64,000 nt of DNA from Corallochytrium limacisporum Hawaii (taxonomy: Eukaryota > Protista > Pluriformea). Made by a program: the position numbers and the translations under genes. The first letter of the stretch is position 1. Each line of letters opens with the position of its first letter. The notes under the pieces are model-generated. The model was not told the origin of the DNA. It searched no databases and saw only the letters and a list, made by a program, of their open reading frames with translations. The stretch lies in contig PDIP01000014.1 in the NCBI GenBank assembly GCA_002811645.1, positions 62,001-126,000 of the forward strand, given 5' to 3'. This document shows, piece after piece, positions 10,323 through 21,555 of this stretch.

Positions 10323-13300
10323 GTCTTTCCTCACTACCCCGACAATCCATCATTCTGGATTCTGAGCACAATGAAATTATTATACATGATTCATCGAAGT
10401 GTGTGATTTTATTTGATGTTGAGGATTTGATAAAGACACAATGAGCACCCCTGTTGATTTTTGCAGACCACATTTCTTCAATGGGCTGGCGGGAGGTGCG
10501 ACCAAGCCTCCCTACAAATGAAATCCACAGCTGCCGATGTCTCGTGCCAAGCGTTCGGAACCACACTGTGTGGTACTGAGACAGCGGAGCAGAAACAGCG
10601 CTCTTGCAGGCCGTCGTGTTTTCGTACTCTATTCTCACCAATGCATTCGATCTTGACCTAAAGGTAAGCGGTGTGCGTTTCCTCAGTGCATCTGTACGGA
10701 CTTGGGGTTGCCTAGCGAAGTTTGATGCGTTTGCCAAGTACGCTCCGAGCCGCACGTCAACCCAGAGAAATCGGTTGGTACATTCCTGCACCCACACTGC
10801 CTGCAAGGAAAAAGGAAGAAATAAAGCGTACACAAGAAATTGATTCGGGATTATGTAAATCTGCGGCGCAAGTGCATTAGTGGACGCTAGCGTAACTGTA
10901 ACACCAATCGAGACGAGTTTGGTCCCTACGGAGGATGCTGGTACGATCCTTATACGCGTTCGTTTTGTATACGCGCTCGTTCGTGGGGGCAGAAGCCCAT
11001 GACTGGTACCTTCTTGTCCAGACAGAAGTCGAGCCCGTAGTAGAACGAGGGGGTTGGGGTGCGAGGGACCAAACAAGGAACGGACAACCGGATCGTCGCC
11101 TTGGGCGGCGACATCCATGGAAATGCGACATACACAGAGACGGACCCACATCAGCAGGCTCATCACCCTCATAAGTCGCATGAAGAGACTACACCAGAGC
11201 TCTGAACCGATGCATGTCTCGGATTGCAGCGCAACAGCACTTCAAAAATTGTGAGTCGCAGCATTCGACCTTGGCAATTGCTCTAGCTGCGCTGGTAGAT
11301 TTCGTCCTGATTTTTCTTGCCTTTTCAATGCTTCCGAAAATGTGGGTTCGTTTGCTATGCGATCTCAAACAAAGCAATTGCGTCATTAAGAAACCAGCTA
11401 TAGACTTATTGCTTCTACCCGGTCAGTTTTTTCCGTCACCCACAAGCCGATCAGAAAACGATGTGTTTACGACGGTAAATTCCAAAACAAGCTACCACGA
11501 GCACGGAGCAATCACCGCAAACCCGCAAGCAAAAGCGCCCATGGGATGTCTGGTGGACTTCCTATGTACTTGAGGCGGCCGCGCTCGTTCTGTTGGCATC
11601 AACCAAAAAGAATGACCAGATCGCAGTATCGCACATGGGGATATTCGCTCATGCATGGACAGTGTCTCGAGCAGTAAAAGTTTTAGCCAGCGATGATGAT
11701 GACCATGTCCTAGCGATCATCCCGCAGCACGGTACATGGATTCCCATTTGCTTCGGGCACTACAGATCGGTTGGTCACCAATCAATTTCTGCTTTTTCTC
11801 ATACCACCAGGGTGCTCTTTCCATTCATGTGCGTTGACATCCCGGCAGGGATCCAAAGGTACCTGGCCGTGAATCATCGCCGACTAGCTACACGATGGCA
11901 CATGTGATACCCACTAGAAATTCTAGACAGCTGTGGATGAGGAGCTCTTATCCTTCTCTGCAGTGAAGGCTAAGCGAGTGAACGCGCGAAGAACAAAGCA
12001 GGCTCCTACGATCGCGCATAAGAATGTGGTAGGACACGACAGGGTGTCGGCACGACAACTTGGGAAGACAATATGCTTCATCGACAGTCCCATTGAGAAG
12101 GATGTTCCATTTTTGAACCACACATTCTGAAGATCTTCCTCCTACGTCTTTTGGTGCTGGCTCTCCCTTACGGTGTCTGAAGCGGGGTATCCCTCGATAG
12201 AGCTCGAAAGAGGTGTGACGTGATTCATAATTATGCCAAACTACAAATGGGACTGCCCGGATGGGTGGACGGTGGGAAACATGTTACGCGCAGTGTACAC
12301 CGCACAGCAAGAAGGCACGGTCCGCAAAAGCCTCGCATTGGTCTGCGGTGGGACCATTGGAACGTTGAACTCTGTGCTCGTTTGCGTCTCTTTTGGGATT
12401 TGTACATCAAGCTGTCCCCTTACCATTCAGCTGTGAATATGTGAACAGTCGGGAGAAATGATCTGTTCATGTAAAAAGAAACCGCCGCAGGTCATTTCGC
12501 ATCTGGGATCTCTAGGGTCATTCAAAACGGATCGTCCTATCCCTTGAAATGGCACTCTGCCGCCGGAAAACTCCAGTATGCGCAGAACCTACCCACAAAT
12601 TTGCATACCTTAGTGGCAATGGCGGGCTGTGGATTTCGAGATGAACTGTGTTCCTCGCTCTGGCTGGCGGGACAGTCCCAACGGTTTCAAGTGAAATAAT
12701 ATCGCGGTAGTGAGGCATATTGGGAATGAGCCAGGAAGATCGCGAAGCAAGGGACGAAACAAGTTACCACCTTCTCTCGCCGTGTGCCGAAGCTCCTCTG
12801 TAGGCCCTCTGGCCGAGCAGAAAGCGATAGCGAACGCAAAAGTGGGATACACGGCATACTCAGTACTGAAACAGGAAAGATGCGGCACGGACTAGGAAAA
12901 TACCACACTGCAAAGGTGCGAGAAAGACCCTTCCCCTCGAAGGCCTCACTGCTGTGGCCGGACTTAAGCCGAAGGACTTCTTACGGGGTGTGGCGCGGTA
13001 AGGAAATACTTCCACTATGTTGATAGTCATACGCCGTACAAACCGCCTACAAACCGCGGATTGTTCGCAAACGCCTGTTTCCCACAAATGATGGTCCGAC
13101 GCCACACTCGTGAGGATCTCCCATTTATACCAAGGAATGCGCATGTAACAAATAGCAAAGCCATATAGACACCAGGAGAAACTATAGAGATTGTGTGTGC
13201 CTGTATTGGTTGCGAGTTGGAGCTCGGTCCTGTGTATCCGATCGCCGAAACGATGCGCGCATTGCACTACGACATAGCTTGTTGAGACTGCCGTGGAAGG

Positions 13301-14154
13301 TAGCCTTCCTAGGAAAGGAAGAAGACATCTGCCCCAGCAGGATGACCTGCTTGAATGGAAGACCCCAAAGTGAGAGATGTCCACCATGTTCACACCATAT
13401 CAGAGGATGGTGATGATTTGGGGTACTTTGCCGTCGCTCGGAAGAGTATGTGTCTTAAGCTTGCTCCGGCTGTCCAGGTCACGACTTTGTACACACTATT
13501 TCCTTAAATGTTCGGGATCGGCATATCGAAGAGGTTTTGGATGACACCATCCCTCAGATTGTCGGAAATTTAATTCTTGGATACAGTGATCTTGTGGTTG
13601 TCTTAGCGGATGAGACTCACTATTCAATTATTGATGAGAAGATAAATACCTTGGGCTTCTTGCTCATCTCCGGTTCGTCCACAGCAATCCCTCACTGTAC
13701 ACCGATAAGGGCCATCTTTGGATCCACGTCGAACATCTGACCGTAGCTATGCGGGGTCCGGTTTCCATCGTGCACCGAGGCTGCTGCTTTGTTCCGTTTC
13801 GTGTTCGTCACTGCAAGGTCGGGCGTTCCGAATAAGGACACACAAACAGAACTGGGATGGGCAACCTGCGCTTCAGGCTGGAGTGACACAGCTTCCTCAC
13901 TGCGTGAGATATGATGTGTTTCGGCTTCTGGGTGACTAACCATTGTGGAAGAAACTGGAACGCAATAGAAGATACTCTGCGCTGTAGTGCACTTCCAAGT
14001 CATTCACTTCTATGTGTCGCGCTACCTATTTCCCAACCACGTTTAGTGAAGTCACACATACTCTTGTCTGATAACTACCCAATCAAGCATCTCCCTAGAA
14101 GGGGCATTCAAGTAAGCCAAGGGAGAGATTAAGCAAATCGGAGACAGTAGCAGA

Positions 14155-17100
14155 CATTCCATTTCGGAGATCCTAGTATGGCGGTTTTGGGAAATCGATC
14201 GGTGAAACGTGGAGTTCATAAGGGGTGCTCTAGAATTCGCTTTAGTTACTTGCTATGAGAAAAGGGAGCATTACAGCTGCATAAACCTGAAGGGGGCGCG
14301 GTCGAGGTGCGCGCGCATTTCGCGCTTTCAAACAGAGGTGTTGGGGCCCCATCGTTACAAAATGGAATCTCGTAACGTGGTGTCTTTTTCCAATAGTTGG
14401 GTCAAACTATCATTTCTTCACATTCCGATCTGTTCCGAGTTTTGCATACAAGTGACCATCTTCCTGCATGCTACTGTCGTCCGCCTATCAAACCGAACAG
14501 CAACTTGCTGATTGGATTTAAGGATCGAGGCCAACTGTCTGCTCATTAGCGGTGAGTGTCTTATTTCTTTTCCGTTTCTGACTTGCGTAGCGAGCATCAA
14601 TCGTTGAAGCATACGAGTCGACGGATAATAGTATACACACGAGTTCACAAGCTGGAATACATAAGCCATGGTAAGAAGTCATCTATCATTCAGTAGAATC
14701 ATTCATGGAGAAAACTTCCAGGCACCTCACAGTGTTGACTTTTCGATTCAATGAAGTAGTGTACGAGTATTACACGTTTGTGTACTGCACCTCTGTGGTG
14801 TGTACGTCGATGAATTTATGAGTAGGACTTAACTGGTTCAGATGTTGACTTTCTCGCCAATAGCAACGTCTTCTGGGCTGCGGAGCCTCATAGCCACAAT
14901 CAACAAACGCCATCCATGATGTTCAGTACAAGAATGACTGTGAGTACCAGTACTGCAACTGTATTTTGAGTGCTAGGTTTTGTGGGGCACGGACAACGTG
15001 GCTGTGCGGAATTGGTATATGGTAGGGGTCTTGCCTTGACAGATTCTCTTCGGCACATTGCCAACAGTGCACGACCAGCGGGCACGCGGAATGCAAATCA
15101 ACGTGGTGGTACCGTATAAAGAGGTCCACAAGCAATTGATACACCGGCAGCATGACGTGGTAGGAGTGCGCTGGATTGACAGACAATTATGTCATCGGCA
15201 TGCTATGCCAACAATCACATTCCACAGTAGGCCGTGTTGGTAGAATTTCTATTCCTGCATCTTTCCCTAAAATTCACCCACGGCTGCCATTCCCCGTCCG
15301 TTGTCTACATCTTATGAATCTTTATATGCGCCCTCGAGGATGCCTCACACATTTCTTTCAGATAAAGAAGCAGTGCGAACCCCCTTTTCACGAAAACGGC
15401 GAATACAGCCCTCTTCTTCGGACCTATCCCTTGCGCTAATCATTTCCTTACATTCCTTTAACGGCTGCATGCGACGATCGCTTTCCACACTCTTTCTATT
15501 GCGCCATTTTTGCTCGTACCTTGTATCTGTGTGATACACTGTGGACGTTGTGATATCCATGGATGGAGACCGTGGTCCAATAACGGAATGCAATGGGTCA
15601 ATTGAAGACGTTGGCTTAGATAGTGATGAAATCTATGGTGAAGAGAGTCTGTTTCATGGGACAATTCCTCTGCTTCGACATTGCACTTTCCCATCGCGTC
15701 TGATGTCAATTTATGGTGAGGAATGTCGCCGTGAGCACACTAGAGAGACCCGACAACCATGAGTTTCCGGTTGTGGTCATGGACCAGTTTGTTGGCACGA
15801 CCTGATCAGATTTAAAACGATGCCAACTGACACCAAAGCCAACCCTTGACACCTCGTAACACTTCCTTAGTTTCGTAGTCTTGTGTCGTGGGGCCATGGT
15901 ATCGTGCCGTTGCCTTGCTCTGCAGGGAGGATAAACGCTGGTCACATGCATTGGTTCCACGGGCGAGCACTATTTGGGTTACTGTTGCTCCTTTTAGATC
16001 AATGTTGACTATTCTACTTTCCTGCCCAATGACGTTTATTCTGTGTTTGGACACATTCTTGGATTCTTTCCGTTTTCTATGATGTTGTGAAAACGGCACA
16101 AAGCAAGTAAAGATCCAACAGAAACTGAACCATTGTGTGACTAGGTCCTGGCAACACAAGTATTCCTATGATGGACACATTGATCAACAATATGAGAAAA
16201 TTCTGATGCAAGTGACAATATAGGGATGAGTGCACCCTATCACGTAAACTTCTAGTCCATGAACCTCGTGTAGAGTTCTCGAGCAGTACGCACAGAACCA
16301 AGGCGACTCTACCGAAGGGCTCGGGCTCATGTCCATTTCTTTCTCTCGTGTATTTTCCCTTCTGAGTGGATGCTGCTGCATACTTCTGTCGCAAGAATTT
16401 CAATGTTCTTTGCACGTTTTGCATACCGTGAGGAAGCAGTTGCTGTGCTCATGGGAATCTGCTGCATCCAATTGGAAGTAGTCGAGGTTGGGATCATCTG
16501 ACATTGTTGAGGGCGAAGACTGGATGTCGCTTTCCGCCGAGATGGTCGATGGAAGTGTGTACATGACCGTCAGTGAGAGAAAGGAAGACTCGCACCAATA
16601 CTTTCTAGGTTGATTGCAGTTTTCTCGTGGAGCACACCATTTGCGATCTCAACGAAGTTGTCAGGAATGTTTGCAAAAATTCTTAGAGTCCGCGCAGGGC
16701 CTTGTGTTCCATCCCAACACTCCTGCATCAATTTTCAGCAGATTATGTACATGGTCACAAATTTGTCGATCCCAGAATATGGAACCGGTCTACCCCCCAA
16801 AAACAAGGTGGGTGGCGCTTATTGACAACATTCACATGCAGCATAATCAAAAATAGACAGAGAGAAGAAATCGTGAGATAGGGGTCAGGACCTTCCAAAC
16901 CAGGCGGGCAACCAGCCAGCCCTACCGAATCATGTGCTGCTCCTTGCCCCCGAGAATTGAGTCATAGAAAAACTAAAAATTTCTTCTACCTTGCCTGCTT
17001 GCGTCGATGTATTGCAGTTATTCTGTTCTACACATACCAATCCCCAGCAAGATTGTAGCAACAAAAGCAGTACAGTCCCGATGGTGTGCTTCGTGCTCCG

Positions 17101-18738
17101 TCTCGACTGTCTTGGCCTGCGGACAATCCTGGAAAGACTTCAGGGGATCATATACATTGAGTTCGTACATTTTTCGTGCAATCTAGGTGGTGCGATTTCA
17201 TTCTTGTGTGCCGCAGTCATAGAGAAATTGCACCGAGAAATAGCACAGAACGTAAGTACTTCGCAGACTAATATTTCTGTACTGTTGGCCATCGTGGCAG
17301 AAAAACACAGGCTGGAATTGCATTCCTCCCATCATCACCACCCTGCCGATTTCCCTAAGAAGCAATAGAAGGATCTCCGGGGCAGGGGTAGTTCGTCAGG
17401 GAAGAGAGTGAATGGTTGGAAAACTGTGCTCCGAAAGCATCTTTTCTCCCAGGATTAGGTGAGCAAGTACTTGTCGATGGACACGACCAACCACTCAATT
17501 GCCAATGTTAGGTATTGGGGACAAGGGGAGTCATTTGTTTTCATCAGCATACATCATGGCCATCACATTGGGGCCTGGCATATGAATTATTCCCTGAACC
17601 CCATCAAGCCCCGACTAGATCTTTGCGCAATAGTCTCCACAATGTATCCAGATGTCGAAGGACGGGGCATGACAGCCATACACCTTAACATGGAATAGGG
17701 ATGGCACGCATGCAAAGGCTACTCCACCGCATTTTGCTCAATTTCTTACTCTGCGCTTGATACATACGAGCTGCCTCTATCCAAGACCAGTCCTCACATC
17801 GGAAACCAGGTCTTGTTCGTCCACAGGTCAGAGATCCCACAAATTGCTATCCAGCAGACTCCGCTTAAATTTCAGGCTCCACTACCATTCGCAAATGCTG
17901 AGAATAGGACCCCATCGACTCCACTTCAAGTAGAAGTCTGCTGTCAGGGGGTACGGGGTCCCCCCCCCCTCCCCTCGGAATTTATAGCACTTTCCTGGAG
18001 CGAAAACCCGGGTTCCCCTTATGTACCGATATGATGGAAGAACTTTTTCGAAATGTCGGGAATTGGCCGAATGGAAGTAGACAAGGCAAGGAGATATGAA
18101 CTTGAAGCCGAGCCCACACGATAGAGAGCGTCCTCTTTCCTACTAGTTCTAGTCCGCGTGCGGCAAGAAAACTTTTCTGCAGACGAGAACAGCCGAAGAC
18201 ATTCCATTTGTTCACTTCGGAATGCTGACCCGTGTCAGTTCTAGTCGACCATAACGAGCAGCGATGAACAGGAGACTGACACTCAACTCCAGTTTCATTC
18301 TTTTCCGACGGCTGATAACCAGCACACTCGACGAGCTGCTTAGTACCTATCGGCAACTGTGGAGCAGCGGAATGATATTATCGGGTGCATAAAGGAACAC
18401 AAGAGCGATAAACGGGTGGGTAGATGGGAAGAGTAGCTGTGGATGAGCACTAGAGTTAAAAACGCGAGAGCAGCAGCCTGGCAAGGCGATGGGAAACTGA
18501 GGAGGTGAGGAATGCAATGCCATTAGGGAACGACTCGTCTATCCTGCCTCCAGCGATAGATTTGTCCGTTGCAGGAATTTTTTTTGCATCCACAACATGT
18601 GTGTATCTCGTTCCGTGTCAGTGTGCCGTTAATGCGCTCACAGATCCATGGCTGGAAACGCATAGAAAAGAGGGAAAGGGAACGGGGACCGAAGCGTCTT
18701 CGCCCGGAGAGCCCCCGGGGAAGGGGAAAGGGGGAATG
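14155..18738. promoter_or_regulatory. Cluster of TEAD/MCAT-type sites (CATTCC/GGAATG) upstream of the Tondu-motif gene
   Basis: Hand count of 15 hexamers, starting at 14155, 14421, 15088, 15218, 15288, 15451, 15585, 15720, 16664, 17321, 18200, 18219, 18369, 18509 and 18733. About 2 are expected in 4.6 kb at equal base frequencies. Confidence 0.55.
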
Positions 18739-19145
18739 GGAAAGATGGGAAAATCGCAGATGTTATCGAAACCGGAAATTGGAAGTTAATTGGAGCTGGG
18801 GGGGGGGGGCGTTTGATAGGATTGGTCCCGTACCTTACACAGGCTTCGCAAGGGAGGGGTTCCATAGCTGCGAGAAACGGGAGTGCTCAAAAGCGATGGG
18901 GAAAGGCTGCAAGACCTGGAGAGTCAACTATTGTGCTGGCTGAGATGATCTGTGGTATTCTTTGGCAGCTTCCACTTCAAAACTAAGATGTTTAGTAGCG
19001 TCCACATAGATTCCATAAGTAAGTGTTTACAAAGGTATGCGAAATTAATAGCATCATAAGGTAAAAGGAAGGGTATTCTGCAATATGTGACCCAGCACTG
19101 TGCTAGTGCCCATAAATCATCACGTCACGGAAGAAATCCGAAAGT

Positions 19146-19418
19146 ATGAAGTCATCAGGACTTGACCTCTTGTGCGAAGTCGCGTTTACGCGATCCGAAT
19201 CTCCCTCTACCTCACAAAACCAGTCATCTCCCGGAACACCGTCTGTGCGCAGTGAATGTGCACGCAGTGAGGTCAGCGTGGACAGCACCATGAGCCTCAA
19301 TTCAAACGGTAGTGTCAGAGCGGTCCCTCAAGGCCCTTTCCAGGAGAAGACCTTCTTTTCCGCAGATGATCACTTTAAGCGCGCATTAGGTGAGGATTGG
19401 CAAAAGCTGTGCCAGTAA
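19146..19418 (+). CDS. Vestigial-like (VGLL4/Tgi-like) microprotein with a Tondu/TDU motif
   Basis: ATG..TAA, 90 aa. C-terminal SADDHFKRALGEDWQKL aligns to VGLL4 TDU2 SVDDHFAKALGDTWLQI. N-terminal GLDLLCEVA helix and S-rich disordered linker. Confidence 0.7.
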   Translation: MKSSGLDLLCEVAFTRSESPSTSQNQSSPGTPSVRSECARSEVSVDSTMSLNSNGSVRAVPQGPFQEKTFFSADDHFKRALGEDWQKLCQ

Positions 19419-19598
19419 ATCCTTGACTTAAAAACATCTTATCATCGACTTTCGCCCATTTTGCGAACATACAAAGCACACAAGCATTCACCATCAAAAC
19501 ACATTTGCTCATAGATATACATATGACGATTTTATTTATCTTGACTTTATGCTCATGACCATGTACAATGACAGACCATTAGAGGCCCATCCCATGCA

Positions 19599-20624
19599 CT
19601 AGTCGCCTCGGACATTGATGCGAATGTTGCGATTGTACACATCTGCGAAAGACGTACAAATCTGATAGTAGTGTTCGACACATGACCGTATGTAGATTTC
19701 AAGCATGAGCGCAGGATTTAGATGCAGTTTGGCCTTCCGATGGATGATGCCTGTCTTTGGACAAGATCCATGCCAGCAATGCTCGTGAATATCCTCTGTG
19801 GGCGCAACAACTTGCAAGACATAGTCAAGGCTTTCGGCCGGTTTGTAATCCTCCAAGATTGTCTGCAAACAACATTCCTTCAGCGAAAGCACGAGCGGTG
19901 TACCGCAGAGATGTGGTACAAATGGCTCAGTTTGGCACCCCAGTATGGCTGCCTCGCTGTAGGCGTCTGGCACAACGGCCGTCCTTGGAAGAATCAGCTC
20001 CAGCAGATGAGACATGCACAGGAGCTCCAACGATATACTGGTGATGGGGTTCCCATGTATTGCAAGGTTCTGCAGATACACCAGCTGAGATATATCGGGC
20101 AAAGACGTGAGTTTGTTGTTCGCAACAGACAGGACATGAAGGGTCTTCAACTCTGAGATTGCCGCGGGCAGCACTTCCAATCTGTTGCCACTTACGTCAA
20201 GGACGCGCAGCTCTTTGAGATTTGTAATATCCTCGGGGATTTGACTGATGTCGTTGCCGTCAAGGAGTAGAGTGAACAGCTTCGGCAGTTGGAAAACGAC
20301 GTCCGGGATATGTGTGAAGGAGCAGTTGTTGAGGTGTAATGAACTCAATTTTGAGCATTGAACCAGTGCTTTCGGTAGGGACTGAAGTCGATTGTATGAA
20401 AGATAAAGCTCCTCCAGATTTTGACAGCTACCGATCGCTTCCGGTAACGTTTCTATCTGGTTGTATGTGGCTACGATCATAATCAAGCTATCACACGCAC
20501 CAATTGTCTCTGGAATGGTGACGAGGTGTAGATGCCTCAAATCTATGCCATACTTTCGTCCAGCGAAAGTGCGCAGAATTATTGCCCGTGCCTGCAAATC
20601 CATAGCGCTGGAAGCTGATGACAC
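19599..20624 (-). CDS. Leucine-rich repeat protein with C-terminal BC-box-like and Cys/His segment
   Basis: About 8 LxxLxLxxNxLxxLP repeats, then SLKECCLQTI and C/H residues. Confidence 0.85.
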   Translation of the reverse strand: MSSASSAMDLQARAIILRTFAGRKYGIDLRHLHLVTIPETIGACDSLIMIVATYNQIETLPEAIGSCQNLEELYLSYNRLQSLPKALVQCSKLSSLHLNNCSFTHIPDVVFQLPKLFTLLLDGNDISQIPEDITNLKELRVLDVSGNRLEVLPAAISELKTLHVLSVANNKLTSLPDISQLVYLQNLAIHGNPITSISLELLCMSHLLELILPRTAVVPDAYSEAAILGCQTEPFVPHLCGTPLVLSLKECCLQTILEDYKPAESLDYVLQVVAPTEDIHEHCWHGSCPKTGIIHRKAKLHLNPALMLEIYIRSCVEHYYQICTSFADVYNRNIRINVRGD

Positions 20625-21555
20625 ATATGCAGCCGTGTTTCTGTTCCAATATTCTGGACAATTGACATTTTTTCAAGAAGCCGTGGAGTCTTCAATCTCT
20701 TAACAGTCCCACACACGAAATCCCAAAAATGCTGAACATGAGCAGAAAAGGCGGTAGGGACAAGTATTATCAACTTGGAAGGAACGTCGCTCTCAACTTT
20801 CAAATAGGCCTTTGGCAAACCCGCCTCCAATACATGGCTCCCAGGGCGCTCGAGCTCCGTCTCGAAAACCGGACCCGCTCAGGCTGGGTGCGTATTTGAC
20901 CTTTTTGGTTTACTAGGCCCCTAAAATTCTATGTTTGAATCCACAATTTAATCAATTTAATCAAATAGAAGAGGCTGTGGAGAATGTGAATGAGAGCTGC
21001 GGGACTGCGAACATCCAACAGGGAACAAAGAATCCATCACGTTGATAGCCATGGGCGGTGTTCTGATGTACATCGAAAGTCGGCACGAAGCGCCATAGAT
21101 TTGGCCATATTTGTACGTTCAGCTCGCCTTGGCCACCGGGAAACAAAAGTCCGCAATGCCCGGACCCCCGGGAGCCTGACCGGTGATGCCACTACATAAC
21201 TCGTATGCGTTCATCGCTTACCGGCAGGTCGAGGGATATGCAGAAGAGGAGCGAGTACATCGTAACCTTCCTCATACTTCGGCCAAAGACCCATCTTATG
21301 TGAAGTCCGTCGTGCACTTGTCCATCATTCAGCCCAACAACGAGGCCACAGTGAAGCACACGGGGGACTACTTACCCGTATCTAACGGGCTGGAAACTCT
21401 TCTGCGCAATGCTGCGCAACAATTGACCGAGTTTCCAAGAGGACGTGAGCGCCGCATACAATGAAATTAGTGAACGAGGGCATCAGTTATATATTTGGAG
21501 AATGTTGTGGAGTGGGGCTAGTCTTTGCCTGGGACCCCCATCCAAGCACACCAAA

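Follow-up and report, generated by a model that had tools for sequence, protein, structure and literature searches.

A 90-residue candidate TEAD cofactor with a single VGLL4/Tgi-type TDU motif in Corallochytrium limacisporum

Corallochytrium limacisporum is a holozoan outside Filozoa with a genome of 24.1 Mb (PMC5560861). In the stretch of its DNA analysed here (64,000 nucleotides, referred to as the window), we found a short open reading frame (ORF) of 90 codons that ends in a TDU motif of the VGLL4/Tgi TDU2 type. It is quite probable that this ORF is a real, unannotated gene whose product binds TEAD. Our best reading, which we favour somewhat, is that it encodes a minimal VGLL4/Tgi-type TEAD cofactor that acts as a repressor by default repression and is itself under TEAD feedback. 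If the gene is real and its product binds TEAD, a repressor role is probable, the sign of regulation being the weakest step.

The ORF and its motif

The ORF extends on the plus strand from the ATG at 19146 to the TAA at 19418 in a single exon. It has one copy in the genome (24,109,830 bases in 286 contigs), the genes of which are intronless. The first-pass annotation had claimed a 90-aa ATG-to-TAA ORF with a C-terminal TDU-like motif, and its coordinates and translation are borne out. The motif, SADDHFKRALGEDWQKL, occupies residues 72–88 (19359–19409, plus strand), after which two residues precede the stop. Near the other end, GLDLLCEVA (residues 5–13) lies in a predicted N-terminal helix of the pattern L-D-L-L-x-x-x-A (19158–19190, plus), a candidate co-repressor docking helix. 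The two are joined by a Ser/Thr/Pro-rich linker that is predicted to be disordered (19191–19358, plus). In the AlphaFold model, based on an 11-row alignment, helices are predicted at 73–81 and 83–89 (pLDDT 86–89), together with a weak helix at 6–15 and a disordered middle; Foldseek with this mostly disordered model returned no match. Within 19185–19245 of the window, the linker encodes F-x-R-x-x-S19 and Ser/Thr-Pro sites at S19, S29 and T32, all possible kinase sites, and no true HxRxxS was found in it.

The motif was scored with HMMs whose source was 28 metagenome loci fetched by TDU pattern. The all-motif animal TDU HMM matched only this ORF in the genome (E 1.3e-5). The animal second-TDU HMM, built from TDUs outside the pattern selection to limit circularity, also had it as the only match in 24.1 Mb (E 5.3e-4). 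The check with TDU, VGLL4 and Vg_Tdu models that had been proposed earlier is divided in outcome: the custom animal TDU HMMs recover the ORF, while Pfam misses it, both when the ORF is scanned directly and when the genome is searched with PF15245 (VGLL4) and PF07545 (Vg_Tdu). With a matrix from 144 distinct animal motifs, the ORF motif reaches 34.7 bits, for which 1.4e-4 occurrences are expected per six-frame genome; the second-highest score among 630,000 positions is 9 bits. For the TDU motif, hhalign gave 97%. The only two matches of the ORF in a PDB sequence search were VGLL4 TDU peptides; in the ESM Atlas, the three best clusters were VGLL4, with 183–192 of 256 features in common and a score of 0.85, to be read as a lead only. 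Judged by these sequence comparisons, the motif is beyond chance.

All invariant positions of the animal TDU are matched except the first, and S, DDHF, ALG and W stand in register as the first-pass annotation had it. Its caveat that Ala replaces the Val of VxxHF is real: Ala73 stands where 144 of 144 animal motifs have Val or Ile and none has Ala. Lys78 is likewise found in none of the 144, and the matrix score of the motif is just under those of all 144. An HMM search found no second TDU in the ORF, and the stretch upstream of it holds an in-frame stop inside the transcript contig described below.

At the N-terminus, the pattern L-D-x-L-x-x-x-A also occurs in three invertebrate Tgi proteins, and the likeness to VGLL4 PLDVLSRAA noticed earlier is partial: 4 of 8 positions are identical to LDVLSRAA, in a comparison limited to these three closely similar fetched proteins. 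The pattern is rare here: among 924 ORFs of the genome, it turned up in two, and one of these is the 90-aa ORF. Elsewhere in the genome, G000:C279:143608-143630 (minus) encodes VDLFCEVA, near LDLLCEVA; total pattern matches equal the control, and this one may be chance. Several of the Tgi proteins fetched carry PxDLS (CtBP) and PPxY (Yorkie WW) motifs; the 90-aa protein has neither. Sin3 is present in the genome and IRF2BP was not found in a genome search; to name Sin3 as the candidate partner of the N-terminal helix is a guess.

Homologue searches

Single-sequence searches with the 90-aa protein gave nothing or Ser-rich noise. Two profile searches each returned at least 120 matches, and the set inspected consisted of animal-type fragments with two or three TDUs; no EukProt entry was among the matches listed in either, a blank that length limits also make weak. 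The metagenome scan by TDU pattern gave 28 loci with canonical animal-type motifs in all, one of which (L044) looks fish-like and none of which was taken for human. No unicellular homologue was retrieved by single-sequence, pattern or profile searches.

Evidence that the ORF is a gene

Two runs from 2015, X1 and X2, were used; both are guessed to be RNA, and their contigs are unstranded. In X2, a contig of 390 nt spans 19103–19492, begins 43 nt before the ATG and is apart from the contig of the neighbouring LRR gene (19603–20749); there is no X2 coverage at 17000–19100. We list it as a probable unspliced transcript, assigned to the plus strand. It supports a transcribed short gene, as far as an unstranded contig of guessed RNA status can. 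The contig includes an in-frame TAA (19113–19115), which shows the ORF to be whole rather than a terminal exon. The ORF and the LRR gene, a convergent neighbour outside the system (19599–20603, minus), share a contig in X1, as expected of convergent genes in unstranded data. X1 also has a contig in which 19221 is linked back to 19150 (an in-frame step of 72 nt) via the 7-nt microhomology AGTCATC, which is probably a template switch and possibly a tandem duplication or circle. The reading frame is intact in both runs. X2 shows two differences in the ORF, both in the linker (T22A and a silent change at G31), too few to measure selection.

An AATAAA on the minus strand (19536–19531), 62 nt past the stop of the LRR gene, places the end of that gene near 19510. 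It argues against an LRR 3' UTR that overruns the ORF, with the reservation that few genes of this genome use AATAAA. By synonymous codon score, the ORF outranks 97% of a set of 97 intergenic ORFs and stands at the 36th percentile of real genes; by full-codon score, it stands at the 8th percentile of genes. The start context is gene-like, with A at −3 as in most genes of the window. The exact protein is absent among 15 billion predicted proteins, and EukProt does contain the protein of a neighbour. This would suit an overlooked gene, but weakly, as the TEAD and LRR sequences had no exact matches either.

The TEAD of the host

The proposal presupposes a TEAD in the genome, and there is one, with a conserved helix pocket. 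It has 584 aa with TEA and YAP-binding domains, is the only TEA-domain factor, and is encoded at L001:1492-3246 (G000:C171, minus). Its residues were mapped on human TEAD4, with energies from the mutational table of PMC5400505. Of the four helix-pocket residues worth >1 kcal/mol, the host TEAD shares F337, K376 and V389 and has Ile for L380. At other helix-pocket positions, Y369 is Phe, L377 is Ala and F373, of negligible energy, is Val. The host TEAD keeps S336, V389 and the lipidated C367; in the alignment, S336 and V389 stand at the places of two Scalloped residues that form hydrogen bonds with the histidine of the TDU (PMC7566471). In the omega-loop pocket, E263, V414 and Y429 are kept, and D272 is replaced by Gly, K273 by Met and K297 by Ser. 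In TEAD4, D272 is worth >3.5 kcal/mol for YAP (PMC5400505). The register at D272 is anchored by Q269 and F274-P275, after which four residues are deleted. A single-sequence model of the host TEAD was poor (pLDDT 46) and was not used.

The 15 WW matches over the cut-off are accounted for by HECT ligases (four), a Set2-type protein, Pin1 and two proteins that we take, from domain content, to be Cwc2-like and CEP164-like. There is no Yorkie among these 15 in an assembly of 83.4% BUSCO, and the candidates read had no omega-loop motif in any credible frame. One Yorkie candidate remains, a 382-aa frame with a weak match to half a WW domain (E 0.005; G000:C247:202876-202926, minus). The literature is in conflict: PMC7035326 reports Yorkie in Corallochytrium from TBLASTN, with Yorkie/Scalloped complete there, and PMC12132279 treats Yorkie as Filozoa-specific. 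Unicellular Yorkies are also divergent (PMC7784741). Because of the half-WW match, the 83% assembly and the two conflicting papers, absence of Yorkie from this genome is likely, not proven. Among the HECT ligases, one carries the unusual string C1, C2, WW, FN3, CCCH zinc finger and HECT (L068:2577-5609, plus; G000:C173), and another combines leucine-rich repeats with four WW domains (L096:2297-5992, minus; G000:C48).

TEAD sites upstream of the ORF

The 8.8 kb upstream of the ORF (10323–19145) have no recognisable gene and are rich in TEAD (MCAT) sites. They contain 18 CATTCC, compared with about 6 in shuffles, and CATTCC is the top 6-mer of 1,990. The full site RCATTCCW occurs 10 times (at 10780, 13133, 14154, 15217, 15450, 15719, 16663, 17320, 18199 and 18508) against 1.5 expected. 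The genome-wide count of 3,968 in 24.1 Mb leads to 1.45 expected upstream, with a Poisson probability of about 3e-6, or about 0.008 over 2,733 windows, which clumping would weaken. Non-coding DNA taken from other loci has 0.19 MCAT sites per kb. No repeats, Rfam families or Pfam domains that explain the stretch were found. The surplus is independent of the protein motif and, as a count of predicted sites, ties the locus to the sole TEA-domain factor. Another stretch with no long ORF (L085:1-2389; G000:C176:116900-119288) has a similar density, with 5 CATTCC in 2.4 kb and no full MCAT site; it is possibly a further TEAD target or chance. Across the genome, the 3,968 RCATTCCW compare with 1,736 for a reversed control, which may be plain base composition.

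Proposed mechanism and alternatives

In our best reading, the C-terminal TDU would fold on binding, with His76 and Phe77 docked in the helix pocket of TEAD. The disordered linker would leave the N-terminal amphipathic helix free to recruit a co-repressor, perhaps Sin3, and TEAD targets would be kept low by default. TEAD would in turn drive the 90-aa gene, closing a feedback loop. A single motif may be adequate for this: TDU2 alone is enough in zebrafish Vgll4b (PMC13110368). TEAD4 multimerisation changes little with one TDU (PMC13247214), and the complex is therefore expected to be a simple 1:1 one. With no Yorkie found and the omega-loop hot spot missing from the host TEAD, relief of repression would depend on how much of the small protein is present or on its phosphorylation, and not on displacement by Yorkie. 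Several points count against this reading: Ala73 and Lys78, the single TDU, the lack of PxDLS, PPxY and IRF2BP, the failure to retrieve a unicellular homologue, the Yorkie listed for Corallochytrium in PMC7035326, and the activator role of the single-TDU VGLL1-3.

It is important to consider the opposite sign of regulation. VGLL1-3 are bilaterian activators with a single TDU, and short hydrophobic-acidic helices can act as activation motifs. The 90-aa protein might therefore be an activator like VGLL1-3/Vestigial, a stand-in for Yorkie with the upstream TEAD sites forming a positive loop. It has one TDU and no PxDLS, and with no Yorkie found TEAD needs some activator. The motif is nevertheless of the VGLL4 TDU2 type, Vg_Tdu gives it no score and the N-terminal helix resembles that of Tgi, so that we regard an activator as unlikely.

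Somewhat less likely still is the competition with Yorkie that the first-pass annotation had in mind, in which the organism has a Yorkie that is divergent or missing from the assembly, and the 90-aa protein simply keeps it out of the helix pocket. The report of a complete Yorkie/Scalloped pair (PMC7035326), the divergence of unicellular Yorkies (PMC7784741), the incomplete assembly (83.4% BUSCO) and the half-WW match at C247:202876 would accommodate it. Against this, no strong WW protein is Yorkie-like, D272 of the host TEAD is Gly, and Yorkie is Filozoa-specific according to PMC12132279.

Alternatively, a longer Tgi-like gene may have decayed to this remnant, which would bind TEAD poorly, or the motif may have arisen by chance in an untranslated or antisense part of the 3' UTR of the LRR gene. 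The Ala for Val, the linker without homologue, the X1 contig that joins both genes and the low full-codon score (8th percentile) would suit such an origin. But the motif is significant genome-wide, the frame is intact in both runs, X2 has a separate contig from 43 nt before the ATG, AATAAA ends the LRR gene near 19510 and the MCAT surplus is independent; we judge this improbable. Contamination or transfer from an animal is very improbable, for although all homologous motifs retrieved look animal-derived, the ORF is embedded in a contig of an intronless genome, is joined with its neighbour in a probable RNA contig, has a neighbour whose protein is in EukProt, shows host-like codon use and has a motif more divergent than every animal motif.

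Novelty and significance

PMC12922143 (2026), citing Koontz 2013, gives the TDU domain a premetazoan origin; a TDU in a unicellular organism is therefore not wholly new as far as that source goes, and the earlier view of Vestigial-like proteins as animal-only is overstated. Conservation of TDUs of the VGLL4 type extends from sponges to mammals (PMC12922143). In a full-text literature search for Capsaspora and VGLL, the one match concerned YAP. A one-TDU form of 90 aa together with a host outside Filozoa, an apparent lack of Yorkie, the loss of D272 and a cluster of TEAD sites was found nowhere else.

A bolder generalisation, conceivable and on balance doubtful, is that TEAD outside Filozoa is served by a repressor microprotein with one TDU, itself subject to TEAD feedback, while Yorkie and a working omega-loop pocket are both missing. 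If true, TDU default repression would be the older use of the 'YAP-binding' domain and Yorkie would have been added later as a de-repressor; the presumed brake of TEAD may predate its accelerator. Fly and mouse genetics suggest that YAP/Yorkie mainly relieves default repression of TEAD by VGLL4/Tgi (PMC9851404; PMC13110368), and the repressor could therefore be the older partner. Seen in one genome, the one-TDU form may be ancestral or may have arisen by secondary reduction. Here a TDU protein outside Filozoa accompanies a TEAD that has kept its helix pocket but not the omega-loop hot spot, so that the order of events can be tested, and Corallochytrium is stably transfectable (10.1101/2020.11.12.379420). 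More generally, short motif-only regulators can escape gene-content surveys of animal origins.

Comparison with known systems

YAP/TAZ/Yorkie and FAM181 use the helix pocket of TEAD, the site proposed for the 90-aa protein, with LxxLF at the position of VxxHF; the 90-aa protein differs in having no WW domain, omega-loop or HxRxxS, and His instead of Leu. Vestigial/VGLL1-3 (PF07545) have a single TDU with the xxHF core, and the same helix pocket is expected to be used. In contrast to them, the 24-aa Vg_Tdu domain is not scored in the 90-aa protein, an omega-loop is missing and the tail of the motif is VGLL4-like.

The closest likeness in sequence parts is to VGLL4/Tgi (PF15245; PDB 4LN0, 6SBA): a TDU2-type motif near the C-terminus with S, DDHF, ALG, W and L in register, a predicted helix-turn-helix, a possibly comparable N-terminal L-D-x-L-x-x-x-A helix and a Ser-rich disordered body. 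The differences are the length (90 aa, whereas the fetched invertebrate proteins of full length have about 340–480 aa), one TDU where VGLL4/Tgi have two or three, Ala in place of Val/Ile, the lack of PxDLS, PPxY and RPSVI, a score below Pfam detection, and a host apparently without Yorkie. As it lacks a second TDU, the Val, PxDLS, PPxY and a Pfam match, the protein is, on its sequence, a variant of VGLL4/Tgi and not a member.
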